IMG/VR virus record: IMGVR_UViG_3300021338_000003
Span: 62,001 to 126,000 of that record
Strand: one strand, 5' to 3'
DNA: 64,000 nucleotides
The position numbers and the translations under genes were made by a program. Under the pieces are notes generated by a model that searched no databases, was not told the origin of the DNA, and worked only from the letters and a program-made list of their open reading frames with translations. Within the stretch, counting starts at the first letter, position 1. Each line of letters starts with the position of its first letter. Below, piece by piece: positions 29,954-63,746 of the stretch.

Positions 29954-29982
29954 ATCCGGTGTTCCAACCTGGAGACTCTCAA

Positions 29983-31131
29983 ATGCAGCACGGCAAGTTC
30001 AACATCTTCCTCGACAGCCAACACGGTAGCAGCGGGAAGGGTCTCATGACCCCTTTTCTGGCTGACCGGTATGAGTCCCGGTGTGTCAGCACTGCCAACT
30101 TCCCCAACGCCGGCCACGTCACCCGTCGTGCCGATGGGTCTGTGTTCATGGCCAAGGCCATTGCTACGGCAGCGTTCCTGAACCGGTATGGACAGACCGT
30201 GGACGCCTACATCTCCCCTGGTTCGGGGTTCTACCCCGAACGGTTCCTCTTCGAGTGGAACGAGTGCGGACGGCCCGATGTCTACATCCACGGCCGCGCT
30301 TCTGTGGTCACCGAAGACCATGCTGCTCGGGAGCGGGAAGGCAAGCAGTCCACCAAGCATATCGCGTCCACCATGCAGGGGTCTGGGGTTGCCATCTCCG
30401 ATAAGGTGATGCGGGGTCAGGGTATCCTTCTGGCTCGGAACATCGATTGGGAGCTTGAGGCCAAGAAGGTTGGCATCGATGGCGACCTTTCCTCTATCCA
30501 CGTTCTGTCTGCCCAGGACTTCCGAAACCGGGTATTTGAGGAAATCCCCAAGACTACGTGGCTTCACGAGGGTAGTCAGGGGTATGCCCTATCCATTGAC
30601 CACGGAAGCCACTACCCCCAGTGTACCTCGCGCAACTGTTCTGCCCAGGCAGCCATGGACTACATGGCCATCCCCCCGAAGATGGTCGGGGATGTCTACT
30701 TGAACGTTCGCACTTTTCCAATCCGGGTTGGCAACGTCAAGGATGACGATGGCAATGTCCTGGGATATTCTGGAGACTTCTACCCTGACCAGACCGAAAT
30801 CACCTGGGACAAAATTGCCGATGACGCCGGATTCCCCCCGGAGGCCAAGGCCGAGCTGTTCAAGAAGGAACATACCTCGGTCACCAAGCGCCTGCGCCGG
30901 GTCAGCACCCTATCCTATTCGGCGCTCCGCGACGCTGTCCGAGTCAATGGTTGCACGAAGCTTGCTTTGAACTTCGTGCACTACAACGACTACAAGGACC
31001 TTGGAGTGACCGAGTTCGCCAAGCTTTCCCAGAAGACTAGAGAGATGGTTGACCGCTTGGAAGATGAGACCGGCGTTCGAGTGGCTCTCATTGGTACCAG
31101 CGCCTTCCACGAGACGGTAATCCTACGGTAG
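29983..31131 (+). CDS. purZ: N6-succino-2-amino-2'-deoxyadenylate synthase PurZ (adenylosuccinate synthetase paralogue)
   Basis: DSQHGSSGKG (Ser at the PurA catalytic Asp), PNAGH, IASTMQG, EGSQG, YPQCTSR, PIRVG, SGDFYPDQTEITW, TSVTKRLRR, and LNF in place of the PurA TKLD GTP motif; GGAGA RBS before ATG 29983. Confidence 0.85.
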   Translation: MQHGKFNIFLDSQHGSSGKGLMTPFLADRYESRCVSTANFPNAGHVTRRADGSVFMAKAIATAAFLNRYGQTVDAYISPGSGFYPERFLFEWNECGRPDVYIHGRASVVTEDHAAREREGKQSTKHIASTMQGSGVAISDKVMRGQGILLARNIDWELEAKKVGIDGDLSSIHVLSAQDFRNRVFEEIPKTTWLHEGSQGYALSIDHGSHYPQCTSRNCSAQAAMDYMAIPPKMVGDVYLNVRTFPIRVGNVKDDDGNVLGYSGDFYPDQTEITWDKIADDAGFPPEAKAELFKKEHTSVTKRLRRVSTLSYSALRDAVRVNGCTKLALNFVHYNDYKDLGVTEFAKLSQKTREMVDRLEDETGVRVALIGTSAFHETVILR

Positions 31132-35244: not shown

Positions 35245-37143
35245 ATGGCCAAGAGCAAGGAATATAACAAGGACTCCATTCGCCAGCTCCAAGGGCTGGA
35301 ACCCATCCGCCTGCGCCCCGGCATGTATGTGGGTGGTTCGGGCAAGGGAGGATTCCACCATATCCTATGGGAGGTCATCGACAACTCGGTCGATGAATTC
35401 CTGGCCAATCACTGCACCAAGATTCGGGTTCGGATCGATACCAAGCGCAACGTGGCTTCTGTCGAGGACGACGGACGAGGCATTCCTACCGAGACTCACG
35501 CCCAGACTGGCGAACCCACTATCGTATCGATCTTCACCAAACTTCACATGGGCGGGAAGTTCGAACGAGGTGAGGCGTATGCCCTATCCGGCGGTCTCCA
35601 TGGTGTTGGTGCCAAGGCCACCTGTGCCCTATCCGATCGGATGACCGTTTGGTCCTTCCGGGGTAAGAGGGTATACCGGGCTGATTTCTCGAAGGGAAAG
35701 ACTGTCAAGCATGGTCCTGACAAGAAGTCCAAGCCTCGGCCACATGGAACCAAGGTCATGTTCCACCCAGACCCTGAGATCTTCCGAAAGATCAAGTTCG
35801 ACGTGGACCTCATCCGGAATCGAATCCGGTCTACCTCTCACCTCTGCCCAGGTCTCACCATTCTGTTGGTGATCGATGGTAACAAACCCGAGGTATTCAA
35901 GTCCTCTGAGGGTCTGTCCGGTCTTCTGCGGGAGCACTTGGGCAAAGAAGAGCCCCTGTTCGATGAGCCTCTTACCTTCAACCTCCATGACTCGGAGACC
36001 AAAGAGGGCATCGAGGTCTCCATGTGGTGGACCGATGGTGATGGGGAGAAGTGGTACACCTTCGTCAATATGATTGACATCGAAGGTGGGTCCTATGAGC
36101 CTGGTGCTAAGTCCGCAATCACCAGGGAACTCAAGAAATTCTGCAAGGCCGACAAGGTGTCGGGTGATGATTTCCGAGACGGTATGCGGGTGGCCTGTCA
36201 CATCAAGCTCCGGGACCCCCAGTTCGAGGGCCAGACCAAGAACAAGCTCAACAACCCGGAGATGTCCAGTATTGCGGAAAGGGTGTTTGGGGCGCGGCTC
36301 CGAAACTTCCTATCGAAGAACCCGGCCATTACCAAGAAGATCATTACCCGTGCCACTGAGCTTGCCAAGGCCCGGGCAGCCTACAAGGCCAGCCGGAAGA
36401 TCGCCACCCAGACAGCCTATGCCAAGGACCCATCCTCTCGTCGAGGGCTGCCGATGAAGCTCACGGCTGCGCTGGGATGCAAGGCCGAAGACCGCGAACT
36501 CTTCATTGTTGAGGGTGGGTCGGCTGGTGGCTCCGCTATCCGCGGTCGCGACGGAAAGTGTCAAGAGGTTTTGGCACTTCGGGGAAAGATCCCCAATGTC
36601 ACTCCCATCACTGACATGGTGAAGCTTTCGAAGGTGTTCGAGAATGAGGAGATCGACGCCATTATTCGGTCCGTAGGGGCAGGACACGACCTGGAGATGC
36701 CTGGTGAGTCCTGTGACCCCGAGAAGGCACGGGTAGGCAAGGTGGTTCTCTTGACCGATGCCGATGCCGATGGTGGCCACATCGATGCCCTCCTCCTAGG
36801 TTTCATGCTTCGATTCATGTACCCACTGGTGGAGAAGGGTATGGTGTGGGTGGCCCGTCCTCCCCTTTTCGTGGCCAAGTGGGGCAACAACCGGGTATAT
36901 GGTGACTCCCGGGAGGAGGTCATCGGTCTGGCTCAGAAGAAGGGCGTGAAGAAGCCCCAGGTAAGCCGGTTCAAGGGTCTAGGTGAGATGAATGCAGCCG
37001 AGTTGGCCGAAACCAGCATGAGCCACAAGACCCGCCGTCTACAGCAAATCACCGCCGATCGGTCTAGCATTCAGAAGGTCATTGACCTGATGGGGTCGGA
37101 CTCGACCGCCCGTAAGCAACTCTTGCTGGGGGATGACGCGTGA
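35245..37143 (+). CDS. gyrB: type IIA DNA topoisomerase subunit B (GyrB/ParE-like)
   Basis: LQGLEPIRLRPGMYVG, EVIDNSVDE, DDGRGIP, GGLHGVG (GHKL ATPase); FEGQTK; ELFIVEGGSAGG, LRGKI, TDADADGGHI, RFKGLGEMN (TOPRIM). Confidence 0.95.
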   Translation: MAKSKEYNKDSIRQLQGLEPIRLRPGMYVGGSGKGGFHHILWEVIDNSVDEFLANHCTKIRVRIDTKRNVASVEDDGRGIPTETHAQTGEPTIVSIFTKLHMGGKFERGEAYALSGGLHGVGAKATCALSDRMTVWSFRGKRVYRADFSKGKTVKHGPDKKSKPRPHGTKVMFHPDPEIFRKIKFDVDLIRNRIRSTSHLCPGLTILLVIDGNKPEVFKSSEGLSGLLREHLGKEEPLFDEPLTFNLHDSETKEGIEVSMWWTDGDGEKWYTFVNMIDIEGGSYEPGAKSAITRELKKFCKADKVSGDDFRDGMRVACHIKLRDPQFEGQTKNKLNNPEMSSIAERVFGARLRNFLSKNPAITKKIITRATELAKARAAYKASRKIATQTAYAKDPSSRRGLPMKLTAALGCKAEDRELFIVEGGSAGGSAIRGRDGKCQEVLALRGKIPNVTPITDMVKLSKVFENEEIDAIIRSVGAGHDLEMPGESCDPEKARVGKVVLLTDADADGGHIDALLLGFMLRFMYPLVEKGMVWVARPPLFVAKWGNNRVYGDSREEVIGLAQKKGVKKPQVSRFKGLGEMNAAELAETSMSHKTRRLQQITADRSSIQKVIDLMGSDSTARKQLLLGDDA

Positions 37144-49606: not shown

Positions 49607-50530
49607 ATGAAACCACTCCACCAAGTTGTAGCCCAAGTGGGCACTTCGAGTCTGCCGCCTGTTTGGGTCATTCGAGACCTTCTACAGGTAGAGGACAAGG
49701 TGAGGACCGAGAGTGAGGGGAAGAGCCCCCTCACTGTCCTGGACCTCACTATACGAGCCCTCTTGGTCTCGAACCCTACTTTGCCTCCTGAACACCTGCA
49801 CCAGTGCGCTGCCATTATGGTGTGGCGTCTTGGGCTGTACGAGAATTGCAAGGCATATGAATGCATCTTGCGATACAATGACCCTCAAGACCAAAAGGTG
49901 GAGTCGAAGCTCGGTCACCGATACTTGGTAATGGGTCAGGAGATCATTGATCCTTTCTTCGACATTCTTACAGAGCGGAGATACGAGCCGTCTCGGCATT
50001 CGGTATTCCGGGTATCAATGATTCCCTCCCAGTATATTTCCCATATGGTCAACAGAGCTGACCTCCATCGGTATGAGGACGAGCGCCGAGAAATCAGTGG
50101 CCTTCCTGCCCGATACGCTCGGGTGTGTTGGCATATCGCTCGCAGCCTGAACCTCCCTCCCAATTGGTGGGCGAGTAAGGACCACCGGACCGTGGCCCAG
50201 CGAATTGACTTCGAGGGTATTCTCAGGAAGTATGTCTACGACGACCTTGTCGACGAAGATCCCGATTGGGGCAACAATATAGTCCGAGCCATCCGGTCTC
50301 TGTGGCCTGCTTGGCCCGAGGAATCCGTAAGGTTCTTGGTCAAGAGAATTCGTCGCCCATTTGGGCCGTCTGTCCCGAAGGGTTATCAACTGACGCCCAT
50401 CGAGAAAATCAATGTGAAGTACCCCAATTTCCAACAGCAGGGCATCCCGCTCTTCCTTGAAAACAATGGGGCTATCGGCTTTGGCGCTGGCCTACACATC
50501 CCCGGAGTGAGCAACAATGTCTACTATTGA
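49607..50530 (+). CDS. hypothetical protein
   Basis: 307-aa ORF. Confidence 0.7.
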   Translation: MKPLHQVVAQVGTSSLPPVWVIRDLLQVEDKVRTESEGKSPLTVLDLTIRALLVSNPTLPPEHLHQCAAIMVWRLGLYENCKAYECILRYNDPQDQKVESKLGHRYLVMGQEIIDPFFDILTERRYEPSRHSVFRVSMIPSQYISHMVNRADLHRYEDERREISGLPARYARVCWHIARSLNLPPNWWASKDHRTVAQRIDFEGILRKYVYDDLVDEDPDWGNNIVRAIRSLWPAWPEESVRFLVKRIRRPFGPSVPKGYQLTPIEKINVKYPNFQQQGIPLFLENNGAIGFGAGLHIPGVSNNVYY

Positions 50531-53500
50531 CGACAAGATCCCGGGCGCAAACTGGAAGGTTCCCCTCAACTCGGATAACCTCAAGTTCGCCGCGGACCAG
50601 GCGGAGAAGGCTGTCTACGACACCCGCAAGCTCATGGCCGGGTCCTTCACCTCTTTGGCTTCTCCGGGTATCGTCACGGACACGGACCCTGCGTCCCTGA
50701 CTTCCGGTGAGACTTCTGAACCCCTTTTTGTTCAGTTGGACCCGGATAACCAAGCCCAGGTTATCATATACCCGGGCTCCGCGGTCAACTCCCTGAACCA
50801 GCTCATTGAGATTTCTGAACAGCAGACGGTGGATGTTCGTACGCCAGGGACTGTGGGTTCCCAGACCGTTGTGTACGTCCAATATGGGAACCAAGAAACC
50901 ACGCCTGTCCCTACCCGGACCCGTATTGGTGATGTCAAATCCCGGTTTGAGGTCAATGCTGAAGAAGATATGTGTTTCAGCAGCACCCTGAGTGCTTATG
51001 AAGCCCTGTCTGAGGAGACCAAGAAGCGGACGGTGGTGATCGGGTTGGTGACTGTGCAAGAACAGTCCGATGGCAGTACCCTACCCGTTGTGGACCTCTC
51101 CCAGGGGACCCTATCTTACAACCGTCCCTGGTATTCGGTGGTTGATGTTTCCCACCGTTCTATGGTAGGCACCGGATCTTCGACTTCGAAGAACCCTCAT
51201 GGAATCTCCCTCAATGAGGTATCCGTTGCTGGGGACCTTTCCCTATACCATGCCCTGATTGGTCGGGGCATCCTCATTTGCCCGGCCAACTCTCTCCCTG
51301 GTGTCCCAGGCACCCTATGTGAAGAAGAAATTCCCGGGAGCCGCTGGCAAGTGGACACCACCGGTGATATCACAGGTCTGGCTAATAGCCAGTATGTGGA
51401 ACTCTTGGGCTATCCCATTGCCCTGGGCGCCTGCTATGTGGTCGATGGTAATGAGGATACGGATCAGGTCGACCTTTTGGCCCCTGAACTCATCACCAAC
51501 CGCACGTCTATTGGATTCCCCACACGGGGACGCAGCAACATCATTGCGGTTGGTCCGAATGTGACCATCGATTCAGGGGAGACATACAGGCTCCGCTACA
51601 CCTGCGCTTCTATCCTGGAGCCGCCCGCGGCCTACGACTCGGACCAGACTCTGACCTTTGGTTCTCCTAAGGGGCAAGAGGTCGTCATTAGTGATGGCCT
51701 GGCCTTCAACACGGTCGAGGACCCGGAGCTTTCCACCGAGGGCCTCGGGACCATCCCTCGCAACATTTGGGCCGTCTTCGACGATGACCTGGGTCTGGTC
51801 CATGTTCCTCAAGTTCTCGTTCCCTTCACCCGGCTGCGGGACCTTTCCTCAGACCTCATCACCATCTCGGCCACTCCATATGGTGGCGGTCGTATCCGGG
51901 TGTGGATGACGGATGCCATTGCTAACGCCTCCCTCGAAGTCAGCATGTCCATCCAAGGTACCGATGAGTCTGGTGGCCTCATCACCGAGACCATCACTTT
52001 TGATGATACTTGGGTAGACAATCCTGCCCCCTCGGATGTCGAGGAGCCGGCCCAGTGTATTGTGCTGGATTCTACCTTTGCTAACGCTGACCAAATCACC
52101 ATCTCAACCAGGAACAACGATGGCCCAAACACCGCCATCCTAGTCGAGATGATTCCCGACTCGGTGACCACCAGCGGCAACTTCAACCACCCGTTTCTGG
52201 TGTCATCCATCTTCTGGGATGGCTACCGGGCTGCTCGCCTCACCGATGAGCGGGAAGTCACCATTTCCCTCCACAAGCAGGGTCGTCCTCGTGCCGAGGC
52301 CATCGGTGAGGCGGTTCTTACCACTCATGCCTTGAACCCCGAGGTGGGATCGAACATCGTACTTATTGCATCCGAAGATGCAGATCAGATGCTCCACTCG
52401 GACATGCTTCTTACTCAAAGGTGGGCACTCCGGGGCGACAAGGGAATGGAGGACCCGGCACTACCAGCCAGCTCCACTTCGGGGCGCAATTCCTACTACT
52501 ATTCCCGGGCTCTGCGTGCCGCCAATGAAGGGACGGTATGGATTTCGGTTACCCTCCTGGGGATGGCTCGACACTTCAACACCGGAGACACGGCTGAATA
52601 CCGTGTAGCCCGGTCCTCGGACCCCAACACCTGGACTGATTGGCGAAGTTTTGACACCGCCGATATTACCCGCGTCGGAAATCAGGCCAATATATCTTCC
52701 TTCCCTATCACCTTCTACTCATATCTTCCAGAAGCAATCGGTGGTTTTGCATCCGACGATGAGGTGTACAAGTTCCAATTCCGATTCCTGGGGGACTGGT
52801 CATCCTACGTCGTACTTCTTGCTGATGCCGACCTCCGCGAAGGGGCAGGGGACAGCGCGGGGTTGCTCAATCTGAACACAGCCTTCAAGGTTGAGCACTA
52901 TGAATATGGAGCCGGTGCTTCCCTTCGGGGTCTCCACCGCAAAGTGACTGTGGAGCCGCCCTCTGCTGGCGCTGGACTTCTGGCTCCTGATACCGAATAC
53001 CGTGTCCATCTCAAAGCTCATGCATCGGGTGATGGGTATGGGCACCCGATGGTTGTTATCGATGGGCAAGACCCCCTGGGTGCCCCTCTTGATGGTACCA
53101 TCACCTTGCTCAACTCGGGCTATATCATTGCTAGTGGCGGAATCATTGCCGGTGCCAATGGGTCCCTGTCCACTCCTGGAGGGTCCCTTTCGGCCGCTGG
53201 TGTGTTCACTGGAACCTCGGCTTCAATCTCCGGGACTACGACATCGGCCATTTTTGCCTATGCGGCCGAGATGAATGCTATTGAGGTTCTATCCCTGGCG
53301 GAATTCCGAGCGGTTATTGACCAGGCGGATGGGGATTTGGTCCAGGATTGGAACTGGACCAAAGCTTCCGTTGCTTTCCCTGGGGCGGCTCCAGACTTTT
53401 TCGGTCCCACCTCTATTTCCTCGGGGTCCTACATCTGCGTACCCCTGGACGGATCAATCCGTCATGGAACGAAACTCCGGTCCATTGCTCTATGGGTACA

Positions 53501-53789
53501 GCGAGAAGCTGCAGGGGCTGCTCTGACTCTTACTTTGCGGCTACAGCGGGCCGACATTACTGGGAGTGGAACCACATGGACCAACGTAGCCTCCGGCAGT
53601 GAGTCCATTCCGATTGCGGCTGGTCGTCAGGTGTTTGAAGTTTCGATGGGCGACCCAATTGCTGACGTTCAGAACAACCTGTACCGTCTTCGAATCGAGG
53701 CTGATGCCAACGTCAATGCCATGATCGCCCAAATCGGGCTTCTATGGCGTGAAGATGACACGGCAGCCCAACTCAATAAGTTCCCATGA
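50517..53789 (+). CDS. large putative baseplate/tail structural protein (1090 aa)
   Basis: PGIV...VIIYPGSAVNSLNQLIEI...VVYVQY (tail-fibre-base pattern); NPHG motif; Ser/Thr/Gly-rich. Confidence 0.65.
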   Translation: MSTIDDKIPGANWKVPLNSDNLKFAADQAEKAVYDTRKLMAGSFTSLASPGIVTDTDPASLTSGETSEPLFVQLDPDNQAQVIIYPGSAVNSLNQLIEISEQQTVDVRTPGTVGSQTVVYVQYGNQETTPVPTRTRIGDVKSRFEVNAEEDMCFSSTLSAYEALSEETKKRTVVIGLVTVQEQSDGSTLPVVDLSQGTLSYNRPWYSVVDVSHRSMVGTGSSTSKNPHGISLNEVSVAGDLSLYHALIGRGILICPANSLPGVPGTLCEEEIPGSRWQVDTTGDITGLANSQYVELLGYPIALGACYVVDGNEDTDQVDLLAPELITNRTSIGFPTRGRSNIIAVGPNVTIDSGETYRLRYTCASILEPPAAYDSDQTLTFGSPKGQEVVISDGLAFNTVEDPELSTEGLGTIPRNIWAVFDDDLGLVHVPQVLVPFTRLRDLSSDLITISATPYGGGRIRVWMTDAIANASLEVSMSIQGTDESGGLITETITFDDTWVDNPAPSDVEEPAQCIVLDSTFANADQITISTRNNDGPNTAILVEMIPDSVTTSGNFNHPFLVSSIFWDGYRAARLTDEREVTISLHKQGRPRAEAIGEAVLTTHALNPEVGSNIVLIASEDADQMLHSDMLLTQRWALRGDKGMEDPALPASSTSGRNSYYYSRALRAANEGTVWISVTLLGMARHFNTGDTAEYRVARSSDPNTWTDWRSFDTADITRVGNQANISSFPITFYSYLPEAIGGFASDDEVYKFQFRFLGDWSSYVVLLADADLREGAGDSAGLLNLNTAFKVEHYEYGAGASLRGLHRKVTVEPPSAGAGLLAPDTEYRVHLKAHASGDGYGHPMVVIDGQDPLGAPLDGTITLLNSGYIIASGGIIAGANGSLSTPGGSLSAAGVFTGTSASISGTTTSAIFAYAAEMNAIEVLSLAEFRAVIDQADGDLVQDWNWTKASVAFPGAAPDFFGPTSISSGSYICVPLDGSIRHGTKLRSIALWVQREAAGAALTLTLRLQRADITGSGTTWTNVASGSESIPIAAGRQVFEVSMGDPIADVQNNLYRLRIEADANVNAMIAQIGLLWREDDTAAQLNKFP

Positions 53790-53803: not shown

Positions 53804-54778
53804 ATGGGTGAGCAGCGCTACTTTGACTTTGGACGTCTATACAAGGCTGAGGATCAGAACGAGGTCCAGAAGTCGTTTGCGGATGCCTGTGTGCTGGAAG
53901 GATTTGACCTGGGTGTCAGCACTGATGGGCTCCTGCTAACCATCAGTACCGGTCGAGCCATCACTCCAGAAGGTGTCATTATTACCAATGACAATGACCG
54001 AGAGTTCACCTTTGACCGCACGGCGGATGCAAAGAAGTATACTGTATCTTTGGTCCACACCTTCTCTGCGGTCCAGAATGGTCGAATTTCCACGGTGGAA
54101 CTCCGTGAAGTCACAGACTCCGGCGGTAGTCCCATTTTCAGTGGCACTGTGAATGATTTGGATGGTAACCTAGAAGGGACTGTTCTGGGGTGGGTTGATT
54201 ACCCTGGCGGGTCAATCGATCTTTCGATTGACCACATCTACAACGCCGCCAGACGCCAGGCTCTCCCTCCTACTTCAAATCTTACCTCTAGCCCTTCCCC
54301 GGAGGATGGGTACGTACCGGTCAGTGTAAACGCACCCTACATCTCTTCTCCGGGTCTGGTTGTAGACAGCGACACCCTGACCCCTACTCAGGCGGTGGAT
54401 GGGGATGGGTTTCCCTATACTACCTGGACCAACTCCACCGGATCGGACAAAACCATCCTCTTGACCTTCGTGCCTACCAAGCCTACATACCACAGGCCCA
54501 AAGCAATAGAGCACGACCTCCTCATTTCCGGGTTGGGAGATTCAGTGACCCAATTTCAGGTGACGGCCCCCGGATATAGCGGGTGGAGTGTCTCCAGTAC
54601 CGGGGACATTGCTGCTGGAGACAAGGTCATCAACATTTCGGGCACTACTTTTCCGGTGGCTCCGAATCTTGTGTCCGGGTTCAAGTGGATTGCCCGGCTT
54701 CAGGTGACTCTGAAGCCCAGCTCCTCTATGCGCCTGACATATTTCCGGGTCAAGGCTGGGCCCATACCTCTGCACTAG
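53804..54778 (+). CDS. putative tail/baseplate structural protein
   Basis: VLEGFDL...LTISTGRAITPEGVII resembles the N-termini of 12621..17030 and 50517..53789. Confidence 0.55.
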   Translation: MGEQRYFDFGRLYKAEDQNEVQKSFADACVLEGFDLGVSTDGLLLTISTGRAITPEGVIITNDNDREFTFDRTADAKKYTVSLVHTFSAVQNGRISTVELREVTDSGGSPIFSGTVNDLDGNLEGTVLGWVDYPGGSIDLSIDHIYNAARRQALPPTSNLTSSPSPEDGYVPVSVNAPYISSPGLVVDSDTLTPTQAVDGDGFPYTTWTNSTGSDKTILLTFVPTKPTYHRPKAIEHDLLISGLGDSVTQFQVTAPGYSGWSVSSTGDIAAGDKVINISGTTFPVAPNLVSGFKWIARLQVTLKPSSSMRLTYFRVKAGPIPLH

Positions 54779-56707: not shown

Positions 56708-59700
56708 ATGGACTCGTTGCCGAGAAAGCCCCGCAAGAAGTCGTGCCTGGGATGCCCTCTGAAAGGTCAAAGGAACTCCGAATGGTTGCTTCCTACGGTA
56801 TACACCCCTGACCCCGAGGGACACGTAGACATCCTCTTCGTCTTGGACTCACCTGACTATCAGGCCAATGAGACGAAGAGCCTGAAGAATCATAGTCATG
56901 TGGCTTTCATTAACAAGTGGCTTAAGAAGGGTCTATCCCGTCGGGGGAAGGTCAGAAAGCTAGGACGAGGCATTGCGTTTACCTCGGCGACCCGATGCAT
57001 CCCTTTGGATAAGAAGAAGTCCAAGAGAAAGCCCGAAAGTGAGGAGCTGAACCGATGCATTGACTACACCACTCGGGATATGGCGGAATTGGCCCCAAAG
57101 TTGACGGTTCTATTGGGGTCCTCGGCTATCCACTCGATGTTCCCTCATGCTGGTGGAGCCACTGCATCTGCCGGAACCGTTGAAGAAGACCCCCTAGGCA
57201 ACCTCATCTTCTTTGCTTATAGCCCTGCTTTCGTTGAACTTTCGAATGACCCCGAAGTTCTTCGGGAATGGAAGAAGCAAGTCATCCGGATTCTTGAGCT
57301 GGCCGGCTGGGTCAAGGATAAGCACGCCCCCAAGAGCCGCGGTGTTGTCATCGAAGTGGGCGACGATTTCGAGGTATCTGGGGACTACCCTACCTGTGCC
57401 GAAGAGGTCAAATCCATCTACATCGACGATGTAGAGAAGGTGTTCAAGCTGGCCAAGAAGATGCAAAGTCTGCCTAAGGGCGCGGTCATATGCTCTGATA
57501 CCGAGGCCAACAACCTCTTTCGGGCATTTGATAACAAAATGCTATCCGTTCAGTTCGGATGGGATGGAAAGTCGGGATATGTAGTCCCCTACCACCACCG
57601 GAAGAGTCCCTTCAATGCCGATGACAAGAAAGCCATCTATGACTGCATGCAAGACCTTTTCACGACCCGCACCAAGAACGGCGGGTTGTGGTGTTTTGCC
57701 AATGCAGCATATGATATGCATCAATTTCGACGGGAGTTTGAGTGTGAACTCCTCTCTATGGACAATGTAGACGTTTCCCAGGTTGCCCACCTGTTGGACG
57801 AGAACAGGCTCCAAGGGACCCGGGACCCTGAGTGCTACTACCAAGGAAAGCGAGGTCTGTCTCTAGCCGTCCTATCCGAAGTGTACCTCGGGGTTGTCCT
57901 CTCTTCTGAAGATAAGAGAGAGCGTGCGTCCATCCGCCGTTGGCCTATGAAGCGTTTCGTCCCCTACGCCGCTGGGGATGTTGTGTGGCCCTGGCAAATC
58001 CTCCAGAAACAGCTCCTACAAGCTGATGACCAGGATTACCGGCGGCCTCTGCTCCGCCTAATTCGATTTCTTCTGTCTCCCGCCAACCTCTTGGTGGTTG
58101 AGATGGAACAGAATGGATTTCCGGTCGATCTGGAGCACACTCGGAGAATTCGCGGTGCTGCTAGCCCCCTGATTGCCGAGAAAAAGCGCCTGATGGGCCT
58201 TCTATCCAAGACGCGGGGCGGGAAGAAGGCCAACAAAATTATCAATGGTCGGGCAGCCCGGGGTAATCACTATCTCTTCGGAGAGCCCCCATTCAGTCTC
58301 AAGCCATCCAAGGCCAACCACCGGGAGACATTGTTCCTCGACGTTCTGCGGTACAAGCCACTCACCTTCACCGAGCAGGGTGCACCCCAAATCAACTCCG
58401 AGTTCTACAAAGAATATGGAGTGTGGGATGATAATGATGAACCCCAGAATGAAGCGGCCATCATATCAGATTGGGTCGGGGTCGACAAGCTCCTGTCCTC
58501 GTTTGTCAAGAACTTCTACGCTTTGGTTGACCCCGACCGTGGGCATCCAGACATGGTGTGGGATTGCCGCGTCCGTCCGTCTATTCGTCTGGCTGCCACT
58601 ACATCGGGCCGCCCTGCTATCAAAAACCCAGCCATGCAGCAAATCCCTCGGGCCACCGATTCCTACCGGAAGGACGTCAAGGACATGTTTGTGTCCGAAG
58701 AGGGGAAGGTCCTCATCCTGGCAGACCTCAAGGCCAACGAGGTCCGATGGGGTGCCATCAATGCCCAGGCCAAGATTCTAGGAAACCTGTTTCAGGACGG
58801 TCTCAAGGCAGTCAAGAGATTCCGGAAGTTTGCCGATTCCCTGGAAGGCACGGACAAGAGGGCATATCAGGAGTGGCTGCGTCTCGCTGAGGTCAAGGAG
58901 TTGTCTGGCAAGCAGAAGCGGACCAAGATCAAGATCGAGAGACGGCCGAAGATGAAAAAGCTCTTGAAGCTTGCCGAAGAGGCGTCCCTTCGAGGAGACA
59001 TCCACAAGCAGACCGCCTCTACCTTCTATTCGGTGCCCCTCAAGGAAGTCAGTAAGGGGCTTCGTCAGGATACCAAGGCGGTCATTTTCGGTCATATCGC
59101 TGCTCGTGGACCCAAGGCCATTTCCGAGCAGATTGGAAAGAGCATTGACGAAACAAAGGCACTCCTCCGTGATTTTGACCGCAAGTTCCCGGGCCTTGCC
59201 AAACACCTCAATGATAATGCCCGTCTGGCCGAGTCCCGAGGGTATACCGAAGGACCTCAGGGTCGTCGACGTCGGTTCGCTCGGGCTGTTTGGTCAGACC
59301 CTGAAGAGTGGGTGCAGGCCAAGGCCCGGCGCCAGGCCCGGAACAACGGCATCCAGGGCTCGGCATCTGATGCCTGTCTGGTGGCCGGATTCCAGCTCTT
59401 GGACTACATCCGGAAGAATGACAAGAGCTGGAAGCTCCTGAATATGGTGCATGATGCCCTGTATATCGAAGTCCCTGTTTCCGAACTTCCGGCCGCCCTG
59501 GAGGCCGTCGAGCTATCTTTGACCGATTGGACCATGGAGTGGATGTCCGAGAAGTTTGGAATCAACTTCGTGGCTCCTCTTGAGGCTGATGTGGATGCTG
59601 GTCTATCCTGGGGAACATACGTGACCTGGAACGGCACCCAACCTCATATCGATGTGGTCATGGAGTGGGTCAAAGCCCAGCACACCAAGAAATGGGGTTG

Positions 59701-59764
59701 GGACGGTGTCGATGAATCCATGAGGCCCGATCGAAGTGGCGAGGTCCAGTCTGTCATGCTATAA
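56708..59764 (+). CDS. polA: family A DNA polymerase with N-terminal family-4 uracil-DNA-glycosylase-like domain and 3'-5' exonuclease
   Basis: UDG-like CLGCPL, TRCIP, ELNRC, LLGSSA; exonuclease DTE, NAAYD, YAAGD; polymerase TSGR...PAMQQIPR, motif A DLKANEVR, motif B RQDTKAVIFG, NNGIQG, motif C VHD; AGGAGG RBS. Confidence 0.92.
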   Translation: MDSLPRKPRKKSCLGCPLKGQRNSEWLLPTVYTPDPEGHVDILFVLDSPDYQANETKSLKNHSHVAFINKWLKKGLSRRGKVRKLGRGIAFTSATRCIPLDKKKSKRKPESEELNRCIDYTTRDMAELAPKLTVLLGSSAIHSMFPHAGGATASAGTVEEDPLGNLIFFAYSPAFVELSNDPEVLREWKKQVIRILELAGWVKDKHAPKSRGVVIEVGDDFEVSGDYPTCAEEVKSIYIDDVEKVFKLAKKMQSLPKGAVICSDTEANNLFRAFDNKMLSVQFGWDGKSGYVVPYHHRKSPFNADDKKAIYDCMQDLFTTRTKNGGLWCFANAAYDMHQFRREFECELLSMDNVDVSQVAHLLDENRLQGTRDPECYYQGKRGLSLAVLSEVYLGVVLSSEDKRERASIRRWPMKRFVPYAAGDVVWPWQILQKQLLQADDQDYRRPLLRLIRFLLSPANLLVVEMEQNGFPVDLEHTRRIRGAASPLIAEKKRLMGLLSKTRGGKKANKIINGRAARGNHYLFGEPPFSLKPSKANHRETLFLDVLRYKPLTFTEQGAPQINSEFYKEYGVWDDNDEPQNEAAIISDWVGVDKLLSSFVKNFYALVDPDRGHPDMVWDCRVRPSIRLAATTSGRPAIKNPAMQQIPRATDSYRKDVKDMFVSEEGKVLILADLKANEVRWGAINAQAKILGNLFQDGLKAVKRFRKFADSLEGTDKRAYQEWLRLAEVKELSGKQKRTKIKIERRPKMKKLLKLAEEASLRGDIHKQTASTFYSVPLKEVSKGLRQDTKAVIFGHIAARGPKAISEQIGKSIDETKALLRDFDRKFPGLAKHLNDNARLAESRGYTEGPQGRRRRFARAVWSDPEEWVQAKARRQARNNGIQGSASDACLVAGFQLLDYIRKNDKSWKLLNMVHDALYIEVPVSELPAALEAVELSLTDWTMEWMSEKFGINFVAPLEADVDAGLSWGTYVTWNGTQPHIDVVMEWVKAQHTKKWGWDGVDESMRPDRSGEVQSVML

Positions 59765-61721: not shown

Positions 61722-62592
61722 CTCGAAAAAGCCAAGCACTCGCCCCGGAGAATGGAGTTGGGCAGTCAAATTCACGTCCTGGTTCAGGAAGCAGGAGGTA
61801 GTCCCTGAAGAAGTCGCCGTTGCCTCTGATGAACTTCAAGACCTTCTCACAGAATGGAAGGAATGGGACGACCAGAGAGTCAAGGAACTGAAGGAGCGGT
61901 TTGAGGACCCCTTGAAAGACCTCTTGGTGGATGTCAAGGGTGGGTTGTTCACTATGTTCCCTGATGCCATCTGGCTCGAAGAAGACATCACCATGGGGAG
62001 CAAAAATCCCACCGCCTTCAAGGATTCCAAATGGTCCAGGTATACCAGTGGGGGTTTCCCCAAATATATGGTAAGATACCGGTCTGGAGGGCTGGATGAG
62101 GAAGGGGCTGACTATACTCTAGACCAAGCTTTGACTCTATCTAAGAAGCACACGGCTGCTCTATACTACGCCAAAAGGGCTCAGAACAGAGTCAAGCATT
62201 CTGCCAAGAAAATGGCCAGGTATGCCCGAGATGTTGACTTCCTTCAGGAGGCGTATCGCACCAGTATTGCACAAGGCGGAGAACTTTCACTGGCTGAAGG
62301 TGATGGCAGTGTGTCACTGGCCGAACACAACAAAGTATTGGCCGAGTTGGACAAGGTTCAGCAAGAGTCTTTGGCGGTTCAAGGCATCAAGGGACCTGAC
62401 GGATGGGAGTGGAATTCGGGGTCCTGCATGTGGATCTCTCACAGCGGGCCCTATGTGCTAGCGGTCGCCGCCAGTGGAAGTTGGTTTGTGAGACACCACG
62501 CTGAATCCCGCCGGGTTGCCCGGGGCACCTGCGAGTCTCTTCTCGGGCAGTACGGAGCTTTCCATGACTGTAAGGTGGCGGTACCCTCTTAG
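61714..62592 (+). CDS. hypothetical protein
   Basis: GGAGG RBS before ATG 61714. Confidence 0.65.
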   Translation: MANSKKPSTRPGEWSWAVKFTSWFRKQEVVPEEVAVASDELQDLLTEWKEWDDQRVKELKERFEDPLKDLLVDVKGGLFTMFPDAIWLEEDITMGSKNPTAFKDSKWSRYTSGGFPKYMVRYRSGGLDEEGADYTLDQALTLSKKHTAALYYAKRAQNRVKHSAKKMARYARDVDFLQEAYRTSIAQGGELSLAEGDGSVSLAEHNKVLAELDKVQQESLAVQGIKGPDGWEWNSGSCMWISHSGPYVLAVAASGSWFVRHHAESRRVARGTCESLLGQYGAFHDCKVAVPS

Positions 62593-62604: not shown

Positions 62605-62928
62605 ATGAACGAGTTGTATATCAAGGTTAAGCTCACCGACCTGGTGTTTGACCAGTATGGGTGTGAAATTCTGGACCAGACTATGGATATTGACGCTAAC
62701 AATATCCTTGATGTCTGTAGAAACCTGGGTATGGAAACACATCCTGATGGACACAACGAAACACTGATTGGGACCCCCCAACAGATACTGAGGGTCATGA
62801 AAGGGCTGGTAGCAGCAATAGAGAAGGCCAGAGAAGACCAAGCAATTGCAGAATTGGCCGCTGTCATTCCCTCTTCTGAGACGCAGGTGGCGTTCTCTGA
62901 TAACCACCTTGCTGAGGACCCGTTCTGA
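62605..62928 (+). CDS. hypothetical protein
   Basis: AGGAG RBS. Confidence 0.6.
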   Translation: MNELYIKVKLTDLVFDQYGCEILDQTMDIDANNILDVCRNLGMETHPDGHNETLIGTPQQILRVMKGLVAAIEKAREDQAIAELAAVIPSSETQVAFSDNHLAEDPF

Positions 62929-63746
62929 TGTGGCACTTCGTTGACCTCTGCTGTGGGTCCGGCGCCATTACGTTGCATCTTCTGGGTGCCCGGAAGGCCA
63001 TTCTACCCTACCAGGGGTCGAAGTGGAAGCTTCGGGGGCATATTGCCTCATACTGTCCGGGAGGGGCACCCCAGACCGTAACCCTAGTGGACCCAAGTCC
63101 CTGGTCCGAAACCCTAGGTGTTGTTATAAACCCCAAGAAGCGAGAACAACTAGTATCGTACCTGGAATGTCTTGCAGCAAAAGACCCCCGGGAAGTGTAC
63201 GACTCTTTGCAGGGCCATTCGGTTCCAGAAGACCTCATTGAAAGGGCTGGTCAACACCTGTTCCTTCAGCGTCTTGCATTTTCTGGGAAAGCGGTAGGGG
63301 TTAACAGAGGCAATTGGAGCAGCCCGGGGTTCAATGGTAGTAGTGCCTATGGTATTCCGGCTACGGATAAGTTTGGGGCCATCAATCCTATGATTCCGTC
63401 CCTCATCAAAACATTGAAGAGTTACAACCTGGAACCCACCCTGGTTAGAACGCGTCGAGGCAGAGCCGCGGTTCCAGAAAAGGTTCCGCCCAACACCTTT
63501 GTGTACATTGACCCTCCATACCAGTTAGCCACACCATACCCGGATGGTTCTCTGGGCCGCGATGAGGTTATCTGGTTGGCTCAACAATGGAGGGAGAGGG
63601 GGGCTAGCGTCCTAATCTCTGAAAGGGAGCCGATTGTCATCCCTGGCGGAGGTTGGTGGGTCAAGAATATTACAGCCGGGCGAGATATTGACTCCCCGTT
63701 CGTCGGAAAGCATAGTGAGTGGCTAACTGGGAGCAACGACTTATGA
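62928..63746 (+). CDS. Dam-like (D12 class) amino-DNA methyltransferase with rearranged motif order
   Basis: FVDLCCGSGA (SAM motif I), LPYQGSK (motif X), AFSG, FVYIDPPY (catalytic motif IV), VLISE, EWL. Confidence 0.8.
   Translation: MWHFVDLCCGSGAITLHLLGARKAILPYQGSKWKLRGHIASYCPGGAPQTVTLVDPSPWSETLGVVINPKKREQLVSYLECLAAKDPREVYDSLQGHSVPEDLIERAGQHLFLQRLAFSGKAVGVNRGNWSSPGFNGSSAYGIPATDKFGAINPMIPSLIKTLKSYNLEPTLVRTRRGRAAVPEKVPPNTFVYIDPPYQLATPYPDGSLGRDEVIWLAQQWRERGASVLISEREPIVIPGGGWWVKNITAGRDIDSPFVGKHSEWLTGSNDL

Follow-up and report, generated by a model that had tools for sequence, protein, structure and literature searches.

A phage family A DNA polymerase lacking the conserved O-helix tyrosine-glycine pair: an unproven candidate for a new Z-favouring polymerase

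Fusions of a family-4 UDG domain, a 3'-5' exonuclease and a family A polymerase (PolA) are known as UDG-PolA polymerases, and include the N4-like cluster 17 and the unclassified enzymes of the SPO1, SP-10 and SP-15 type (Czernecki et al. 2023, PMC10201439). Conserved UDG catalytic motifs are present in only some members. SPO1, SP-10 and SP-15 are phages with modified uracil in place of thymine (PMC10201439). Cultured relatives of the enzyme analyzed here are the PolAs of the jumbo phages PaBG, Yoloswag and Motura. In phages with the alternative base 2-aminoadenine (Z), the DpoZ polymerases form two clades, the phiVC8-like cluster 18 (PDB 7PBK, as cited in PMC10201439) and the Wayne-like cluster 19. 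The helix-O Tyr is the only residue changed (to Phe) in both DpoZ clades, and it is thought that DpoZ senses pair stability rather than the 2-amino group; however, ordinary polymerases accept dZTP and no single residue explains DpoZ specificity (PMC8599892). This Tyr (Y766 in the Klenow fragment of E. coli) has been described as universally conserved in family A (PMC3715850). The Klenow mutant Y766A is a mutator with weak dNTP binding at A and T templates, which binds and closes poorly on A-dTTP and T-dATP but behaves like wild type on G-dCTP (PMC3715850). The Dut enzymes of PurZ0 phages have been reported as a monophyletic group (PMC12884076).

The 64,000-nucleotide stretch analyzed here (the window; positions 62,001 to 126,000 of IMG/VR record IMGVR_UViG_3300021338_000003) derives from a 250.8-kb marine jumbo phage genome, estimated to be 91% complete, and encodes a UDG-PolA fusion (P0001). 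Its features are listed in the table. A single PolA locus was found in the genome, and searches for PolB, DnaE and PrimPol were negative, making this the only recognizable DNA polymerase of the phage. An AlphaFold2 model (pLDDT 90.2) superposed on Klenow fragment (1kfs) with a TM-score of 0.84, normalised to the target, and placed the O helix at residues 783-797, indicating that the motif B alignment is structurally sound. The catalytic residues D673, D916, R786 and K790 are invariant in an 82-sequence family alignment.

Table. Features of the polymerase gene and of the PurZ-like gene in the window (nucleotide positions of the window)
Feature	Position	Strand	Residues	Observations
UDG-PolA fusion (P0001)	56708..59764	+	1-1018	Open frame without stops; Pfam PF03167, PF01612 and PF00476 (151.8 bits); PHROG 17, DNA polymerase (6.9e-85)
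Family-4 UDG-like domain	56864..57241	+	53-178	PF03167 at 35.1 bits (cut-off 24.3); C13, C16, C97 and C117 kept; family motifs PF-G-G, N-x-V-R-C and HP read SHVAFINK, TSATRC and YSP (column comparison with 81 relatives); probably not an active glycosylase
3'-5' proofreading exonuclease domain	57434..58006	+	243-433	PF01612; D264, E266, Y420 and D424 invariant
Motif A	58724..58747	+		DLKANEVR; catalytic D673 and E678 retained; Leu in place of Tyr shared with Tyr-Gly clade members P0006-P0010, P0017 and L092
Basic insertion at the fingers tip	58802..58996	+	699-763	65 aa between LFQDG and DIH; 21 K/R, 9 D/E, net charge +12; predicted with confidence as a helical hairpin; shared by all 7 clade members (65-80 aa, net +5 to +15)
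Motif B / O helix	59063..59110	+		RQDTKAVIFGHIAARG; R786, K790 and F794 kept
Ala-Ala at the Klenow Y766-G767 position	59099..59104	+	798-799	Replaces the Tyr-Gly of other family A polymerases
Asn in ARNNGIQG	59345..59347	+	880	Klenow A846 position, next to N845, by alignment of the Klenow motif; Ser or Ala in the family; Asn co-occurs with Ala-Ala in all three Ala-Ala-bearing sequences
Motif C	59447..59458	+		VHDA; catalytic D916; HDA or HDS in 152 of 154 family sequences
PurZ-like 2-aminoadenylosuccinate synthetase candidate	29959..31131	+	390 aa	PF00709 at 87.7 bits; best solved relatives S-2L PurZ 7ODX (1.4e-26) and phiVC8 PurZ 6FKO; P-loop QHGSSGKG, with Ser where PurA has the catalytic Asp; T-S-V-T-K where PurA has T-G-R

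The initial annotation had noted the altered motifs A, B and C, the replacement of Tyr-Gly by Ala-Ala, the exchange of N and L for I and H in motif B, a Lys/Arg-rich insert of roughly 60 aa and the retention of the catalytic Asp, Arg and Lys, and these observations, with their coordinates, were confirmed. The Ala-Ala codons are not an assembly artefact, since a contig from a different seawater run covers positions 59066-59216 with zero differences, and the sequence is identical in three seawater runs. Public runs hold this phage only as Logan contigs, from which no inference on base modification can be drawn. Ala-Ala is rare: it occurs in 3 of 154 family sequences (P0001, P0002 and P0034), while the other 151 have Tyr or Phe. 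A scan with the degenerate DNA pattern for R..[TAS]K..xFGx[ILMV]AARG found no other polymerase in IMG/VR or the JGI metagenome collection; apart from the contig of the window itself, the 17 other matches were chance hits in unrelated or non-coding frames. A word-index search seeded with P0034 also found no further Ala-Ala relatives. Single-protein scans of IMG/VR for close relatives of the polymerase and of the PurZ-like protein found nothing, and relatives were recovered only with alignment queries.

It was further proposed in the initial annotation that these changes may adapt the enzyme to Z:T pairs, independently of the known DpoZ clades; this interpretation was found to be partly supported. 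The genome does carry a PurZ-like gene, the polymerase is phylogenetically independent of DpoZ, and the motif B Tyr is truly lost while relatives without purZ keep it. The last point had been named beforehand as a check: all 16 IMG/VR records with related UDG-PolAs lack any PurA/PurZ hit and keep Tyr or Phe. However, four of the five features offered as Z adaptations (motif A DL, the N to I and L to H exchanges, VHDA and the basic insertion) are traits of a large metagenomic UDG-PolA family or of a 7-member clade within it, where the motif B Asn is replaced by I, V or T and motif C reads VHDA or VHDS. They occur in relatives with Tyr-Gly and no purZ, for example L092, which has DL, VHDA and a 78-aa insertion. 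Only the change of Tyr-Gly to Ala-Ala, together with a Ser to Asn change at residue 880 that had gone unnoticed in the initial annotation, is specific to this lineage.

Phylogenetic analysis showed that the trio of Ala-Ala and N880 arose twice independently. P0001/P0002 and P0034 sit in separate clades, each with 100% SH-aLRT support, and the tree requires 2 changes of state. The AU test, performed on 25 rows of the 92-row tree and without the mixture model, rejected a single clade (dlnL 313.7, p 5e-52). No recombination signal was detected, and only 1 of 805 comparable control trios shares 3 or more rare residues. Together these data argue for selection rather than decay, and the variant is probably adaptive. 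The spatial closeness of residue 880 to residues 798/799 is inferred from homology to Klenow A846/N845 and not from a measurement.

The identity of the PurZ-like gene as a candidate rests on sequence. The Ser-for-Asp and TVTK signature residues are those named in bioRxiv 10.1101/2025.10.22.683976; the second motif reads H-T-S-V-T-K-R, and GSSGKG is invariant in 31 subfamily members, whereas the PurA chain of P. horikoshii has GDEGKG and TVTGRRRR in the same alignment. The subfamily is only 30-35% identical to characterised PurZ. The dUTPase of the phage has its best phage matches (50-52% identity) among the Dut genes of PurZ0 Z-genome actinophages, at least 12 of the top 15 being phages that also appear in the PurZ0 list, as judged by pairwise similarity rather than from a tree; its identity to the Duts of polymerase relatives is only 32-36%. 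No DatZ, MazZ or DUF550-DUF5664 homologue was found in the genome by phmmer with seeds from S-2L, phiVC8 and SH-Ab 15497. Pfam searches for MazG, DUF550, DUF5664 and NDT were also negative, although the DUF550 and DUF5664 controls gave no signal anywhere and these two negatives are weak. The single HD-domain protein is a Mesh1/SpoT-type small alarmone hydrolase and not DatZ. A D12-class N6-adenine methyltransferase, odd for DNA without adenine, is encoded 3 kb downstream of the polymerase. Pfam gave no function for 10 neighbouring ORFs of the replication region, nor for the ORFs flanking the PurZ-like gene.

The explanation favoured here, though only tentatively, is that the nascent-base-pair pocket of this sole replicative polymerase was remodelled in its lineage as an adaptation to Z. 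Removal of the Tyr ring would weaken fingers closure on two-hydrogen-bond A:T pairs far more than on three-hydrogen-bond pairs, as measured for Klenow Y766A. The enzyme would then extend efficiently when dZTP pairs with T, or T with template Z, and poorly with dATP, while the PurZ-like enzyme would supply dZTP and the DutZ-like dUTPase would deplete dATP and feed dGMP. In this view the basic fingers hairpin, motif A Leu and motif C Ala are older clade traits unrelated to Z. The domain architecture, the intact catalytic residues, the high-confidence Klenow-like fold of the model, the absence of a second detectable polymerase, the reality and double origin of the Ala-Ala/Asn trio and the presence of the PurZ-like and Dut genes were established by the present analysis, and the behaviour of Klenow Y766A and the Tyr to Phe change of DpoZ come from the literature, but the mechanism, the preference for dZTP, the conversion of dGMP and Asp to N6-succino-2-amino-dAMP by the PurZ-like protein and the activity of the dUTPase are inferred. 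Ala-Ala and purZ are seen together in a single genome only. The other two Ala-Ala-bearing genes lie on contigs of 6 kb and 23 kb with no purZ or dut, and in the 23-kb contig the dut slot that is syntenic with the genome of the window is empty. No purZ was found in the +/-10 kb flanks, the only parts checked, of the contigs carrying P0002, P0006, P0007 and P0034. Furthermore, at least 10 jumbo-phage records with the same PurZ-like subfamily (49-56% identity) use PolAs with canonical NFAFIYGGG/VHDE, so Z synthesis, if they perform it, does not need Ala-Ala. As Klenow Y766A is a mutator, the change could also simply alter fidelity.

An alternative that is nearly as possible is a compensated active-site variant without any link to Z, copying ordinary or Z DNA alike, in which Ala-Ala plus Asn is another way of building the pocket, perhaps tuning fidelity, speed or tolerance of damaged templates, and in which the presence of purZ is coincidence. 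In agreement with this, the one other Ala-Ala lineage with usable context (P0034) shows no purZ or dut in 22 kb, the position after the Tyr is already variable in the family (YD, YQ, FQ, FD, YK in 29 of 154), other purZ-like jumbo phages keep Tyr-Gly and the co-occurrence rests on one case. On the other hand, the aromatic residue itself is kept in 151 of 154 relatives, the same three changes recur independently, and the one Ala-Ala genome that could be inspected as a whole has both PurZ-like and DutZ-like genes while the records of 16 of 16 Tyr/Phe relatives have no purZ. Adaptation to another template or nucleotide modification, in which loss of the bulky Tyr opens the pre-insertion and insertion site for a modified base such as hypermodified thymine, 5hmU as in SPO1-type UDG-PolA phages, or N6-methylated purines, is unlikely. 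The modified uracil of the SPO1, SP-10 and SP-15 phages and the nearby D12 methyltransferase speak for it, but the genome has no ThyA-family hydroxymethylase and no ThyX, the UDG domain has lost the catalytic motifs of the family, and the only base-modification genes identified are the PurZ-like and DutZ-like ones. A crippled or deliberately error-prone polymerase, either a natural mutator allele or a decaying gene in an environmental contig, is suggested by the mutator phenotype of Klenow Y766A but is very unlikely, because the frame is open for 1018 codons with all catalytic and exonuclease residues intact, it is the only polymerase in the genome, its sequence is identical in three seawater runs, and the change is conserved between P0001 and P0002 at only 46-49% identity and recurs in P0034.

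A more far-reaching possibility, less likely than not but not excluded, is a third, independently evolved kind of Z-selective replicative polymerase, which would discriminate Z from A by deleting the supposedly universal O-helix Tyr, as a natural Y766A with a compensating Asn, so that only three-hydrogen-bond pairs close the fingers efficiently. It would operate in the first jumbo phage proposed to have a 2-aminoadenine genome, with PurZ-like and DutZ-like genes recruited separately, and would extend Z genomes to jumbo phages. A natural replicative enzyme lacking a residue that is treated as invariant, through a change that evolved twice with the same partner substitution, would be informative on whether base-pair strength can be read out by fingers closure and on how Z-genome phages exclude adenine when DatZ is absent. 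If the enzyme prefers dZTP, a three-residue swap could become an engineering handle for making Z-DNA.

Compared with the PurZ/PurZ0 systems of the Z-genome phages S-2L, phiVC8, SH-Ab 15497, Wayne and Ghobes, the phage shares a PurA-like enzyme with Ser at the catalytic-Asp position and the TVTK motif, as well as a Dut with best phage matches to PurZ0 phages. The PurZ-like protein, however, belongs to a separate, large and uncharacterised subfamily found mostly on contigs of 100-436 kb, DatZ, MazZ, DUF550 and NDT were not found, and the genes are dispersed rather than clustered. With DpoZ the enzyme has in common that it is a PolA with a proofreading domain, encoded by a phage carrying a PurZ-type gene, and that the helix-O Tyr is changed, but to Ala, with the Gly changed as well, while Phe was seen here for phiVC8, SH-Ab 15497 and Theresita. 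There is no specific relationship with DpoZ: phmmer scores are 17.3 and 13.4 bits, DpoZ lies outside the UDG-PolA clade, and no DpoZ chain is among the best 60 of 64 PDB sequence hits. The gene is 27 kb from purZ and not adjacent to it, and the phage is a jumbo phage of 251 kb and not a siphovirus or podovirus of 38-67 kb. Like the laboratory mutant Klenow Y766A, the enzyme has Ala at this O-helix position and retains the partner residues E710 (E678 here) and F762 (F794 here), but it is natural, sits in a replicative context and has a second Ala plus a nearby Asn that may compensate. The UDG-PolA polymerases share the three-domain architecture, and the enzyme falls inside an 83-row clade (SH-aLRT 97) that contains PaBG, Yoloswag and Motura, with the family-wide HDS/HDA motif C, V/I/T at the Klenow N761 position and an insertion of about 22 aa or more before DIH. 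Its identity to any cultured phage enzyme is only about 25%, and it differs from this family in its Ala-Ala and Asn880, its long fingers hairpin and its degenerate UDG motifs.

The polymerase gene lies in a 250,817-bp IMG/VR virus record (G000), rated 91% complete by CheckV, of which the window comprises bases 62001-126000. Public runs label the source as seawater metagenome, and nearly all genes in the window are located on the + strand. The ORF encodes a protein of 1018 aa (P0001), in which Pfam finds a UDG-superfamily domain, a 3'-5' exonuclease domain and a DNA_pol_A domain, while PHROG 17 (DNA polymerase) matches residues 41-995 at 6.9e-85. The observation made in the initial annotation holds, as every motif reported there was found at its position. 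An AlphaFold2 model built on 82 relatives has a mean pLDDT of 90.2, places the O helix at residues 783-797 and folds the fingers insertion into a confident helical hairpin. The model superposes on Klenow fragment with a TM-score of 0.84-0.85 normalised to the target, and A798-A799 therefore really occupy the Klenow Y766-G767 position. A contig from a different seawater run covers the AA codons without any difference, showing that these are not an assembly error.

Coordinates of the polymerase, its domains and motifs, and of other genes in the genome (G000) and in related loci
Feature	Coordinates	Description
UDG-PolA ORF (P0001)	window 56708-59764	1018 aa
UDG-superfamily domain	P0001 residues 53-178	Pfam
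N-terminal region with the UDG-like domain	window 56708-57307 (residues 1-200)	four Cys kept; PF.G..G, N.VRC and HP motifs lost
3'-5' exonuclease domain	P0001 residues 243-433	Pfam
DNA_pol_A domain	P0001 residues 758-969 (best stretch)	151.8 bits
Motif A	window 58724-58747	DLKANEVR
Fingers insertion	window 58802-58996	65 aa, 21 Lys/Arg
Motif B	window 59063-59110	RQDTKAVIFGHIAARG
Motif C	window 59447-59458	VHDA
PurZ-like gene	window 29959-31131	390 aa
GyrB-type topoisomerase subunit	window 35245-37143	632 aa
ORF upstream of polA	window 50517-53789	1090 aa, no Pfam match
ORF upstream of polA	window 53804-54778	324 aa, no Pfam match
D12-class N6-adenine DNA methyltransferase (weak match)	window 62928-63746	272 aa; 24.5 bits against a cut-off of 22
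dUTPase (outside the window)	G000:143375-143809 (L086:1459-1893)	144 aa
HD-domain protein	G000:238822-239340 (L005:1375-1893)	172 aa
IS605 OrfB/TnpB (Cas12f-like) gene	L011:3252-4439	in the relative carrying P0006
Neighbourhood of purZ-like gene with ThyX	L013:3820-5121	and equivalents in 11 loci

An exhaustive profile-free search of 1.84 billion representative proteins yielded 388 relatives at E <= 1e-30, of which the best 150 were aligned together with the hits of a word-index search, 154 sequences in all. The pair at the Y766-G767 position is YG in 104 of these, FG in 18, YD in 16, FQ in 5, YQ in 4, FD in 3, YK in 1 and AA in 3. The residue at the Klenow N761 position is V, T, I or S in most sequences and N in only 5, motif C is HDS in 120 and HDA in 32, and almost all have about 22 extra residues before DIH. 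The motif A Leu and the long basic hairpin (65-80 aa, net charge +5 to +15) are shared by a 7-member clade comprising P0001, P0002 and P0006-P0010. Thus, four of the five features that the initial annotation had put forward as adaptations to 2-aminoadenine (Z) are inherited family or clade traits. Only the YG to AA change is specific, occurring in P0001, in its sister P0002 (46-49% identity) and in P0034. P0002 has a YAcAr (PF10686) domain in place of the UDG domain. Many family members, among which P0144, P0146, P0152 and other relatives of 1300-1870 aa, carry intein-like insertions inside motif A (after the catalytic Asp and the residue that follows it) or inside motif B.

A maximum-likelihood tree was built from 92 exonuclease-plus-polymerase regions, with the motif B and insertion columns removed. 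P0001 and P0002 are sisters (100% SH-aLRT support) inside the 7-member clade (also 100), whereas P0034 sits in a different 4-member clade (100) with the Tyr-Gly proteins P0003, P0027 and P0044. The AA state needs two changes on this tree, and an AU test on a 25-row subset, with the tested group defined after the tree had been seen, rejects a single AA clade (dlnL 313.7, p 5e-52). A scan for residues shared by the three AA proteins but rare elsewhere found exactly three strong columns: 798, 799 and 880. Residue 880 is Asn in ARN-N-GIQG, which by alignment with the Klenow motif RAAINAPMQG is the A846 position next to N845, and is Ser or Ala in 75 of 79 other sequences. Of 805 comparable trios, each a sister pair plus a distant third, only 1 shares three or more such residues. 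P0034 is more similar to its own clade than to P0001 on both sides of these sites, and recombination is therefore not the explanation. The same three-residue remodelling arose twice, which argues for selection.

The genome harbours one PolA locus, and no family B polymerase, DnaE-type polymerase or PrimPol was found in it. Upstream of polA, homologues of the 1090-aa ORF (29-40% identity) and of the 324-aa ORF (25-33%) are kept in the same order in the relatives L010, L011 and L012, suggesting that they probably form part of the replication module. In L011 the IS605 OrfB/TnpB gene lies about 5.5 kb upstream of the polymerase gene, within the replication gene cluster. The homologue of the GyrB-type subunit in L012 lies downstream of polA, so the region is rearranged between relatives.

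The PurA-like protein has S-2L PurZ (1.4e-26) and phiVC8 PurZ (2.7e-24) as its best solved relatives, ahead of archaeal PurA. It carries the two signatures named for PurZ, Ser where PurA has the catalytic Asp (QHGSSGKG) and TSVTK where PurA has TGR, while a profile alignment shows P. horikoshii PurA with GDEGKG and TVTGRRRR at those positions. No DatZ, MazZ, DUF550, DUF5664 or NDT homologue was found in the genome. The single HD-domain protein matches Mesh1/SpoT-type (p)ppGpp hydrolases, making it a small alarmone hydrolase and not DatZ. The best matches of the dUTPase among 1364 phage records, at 50-52% identity, are Dut genes of Microbacterium, Micrococcus and Arthrobacter phages, and at least 12 of the top 15 are phages that also encode PurZ0. 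In Theresita, one of these PurZ0 Z-genome actinophages, the gene order is DpoZ, PurZ0, two ORFs, then Dut. Such Dut-like enzymes hydrolyse dATP and dGTP (PMC12884076), and the dUTPase is a candidate DutZ-type dATP/dGTP diphosphatase. Duts in records of the relatives of the polymerase are only 32-36% identical. The weak match of one ORF to a D12-class N6-adenine methyltransferase would be unexpected if the genome had no adenine. Observed-to-expected counts of palindromes in the whole genome, from which no conclusion is drawn in the absence of a dinucleotide-corrected control, were 0.33 for GCGC, 0.27 for CGCG, 0.25 for TTAA and 0.44 for CTAG, against 1.8 for GAATTC, 1.48 for AAGCTT and 1.6 for TCGA.

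Sixteen IMG/VR records carry UDG-PolA relatives, including the clade member L092 (37% identity, 177 kb) and four records rated at least 96% complete. None of these has a PurA/PurZ hit and all keep Tyr or Phe, which is the outcome that the initial annotation had asked of purZ-negative relatives. L092 also has DL, VHDA and a 78-aa insertion. However, the comparison has little power in the other direction, since P0002 lies on a 6-kb contig, and P0034 on a 23-kb contig with no purZ or dut, in which the dut slot syntenic with the genome of the window is empty. The PurZ-like protein itself belongs to a large subfamily of 966 proteins at E <= 1e-20, the best 120 at 50-58% identity, with an invariant GSSGKG P-loop. 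Several lie on contigs of 200-436 kb, including complete IMG/VR jumbo-phage records (loci L013-L053). In the literature searched, this subfamily appears unstudied, and no paper linking PurZ or 2-aminoadenine to jumbo phages was found. In many other purZ-like jumbo phages the gene sits next to a ThyX thymidylate synthase and two conserved ORFs without a Pfam match, none of which is present beside purZ in the window. Of 30 IMG/VR records with a PurZ-like protein of this subfamily, 12 have a PolA match over the Pfam cut-off. The 10 clear PolAs read have a canonical Tyr-Gly (NFAFIYGGG, NFAILYGKG or NFAKLYGGG), nine of them with VHDE, and an eleventh, divergent one has YL at that position. If that subfamily makes Z, Z replication does not require AA.

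The proposal of the initial annotation, that the active-site changes adapt the enzyme to Z:T pairs independently of known DpoZ clades, is partly supported. The rarity and convergence of the Tyr-Gly to Ala-Ala change with Ser to Asn, and its occurrence in a genome with PurZ-like and DutZ-like genes, come from the analysis itself, whereas a preference of the enzyme for Z, a contribution of N880 to the pocket, and the activities of the PurZ-like and DutZ-like proteins are inferred from sequence and from published work on other enzymes. A Z-favouring function is tentatively preferred, although it is held to be less likely than not. A compensated variant unrelated to Z remains possible and is only slightly less favoured. 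An adaptation to another modification or a mutator role is considered unlikely, and a 5hmU or 5hmC pathway is not indicated, as no ThyA-family or ThyX gene is present in the genome.

Two published results make the Z hypothesis more than a guess. In DpoZ, the helix-O Tyr to Phe change is the only substitution shared by both clades, and the authors conclude that the enzyme senses the stability of Z:T versus A:T rather than the 2-amino group (PMC8599892). In Klenow fragment, Y766A binds and closes poorly on A-dTTP and T-dATP but behaves like wild type on G-dCTP, while Y766F is nearly wild type (PMC3715850). By inference, a natural Ala at this position could therefore penalise two-hydrogen-bond pairs and spare three-hydrogen-bond Z:T pairs, and N880 would partly rebuild the pocket. 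By descent, the enzyme is a member of the UDG-PolA family, and its basic insertion and most of its motif changes are ordinary for its clade. This family, including the enzymes of the cultured jumbo phages PaBG, Yoloswag and Motura, forms an 83-row clade (97% SH-aLRT support) in the tree. The enzyme is not a DpoZ: the DpoZ enzymes of phiVC8 and SH-Ab 15497 lie outside this clade and match P0001 at only 17 and 13 bits.
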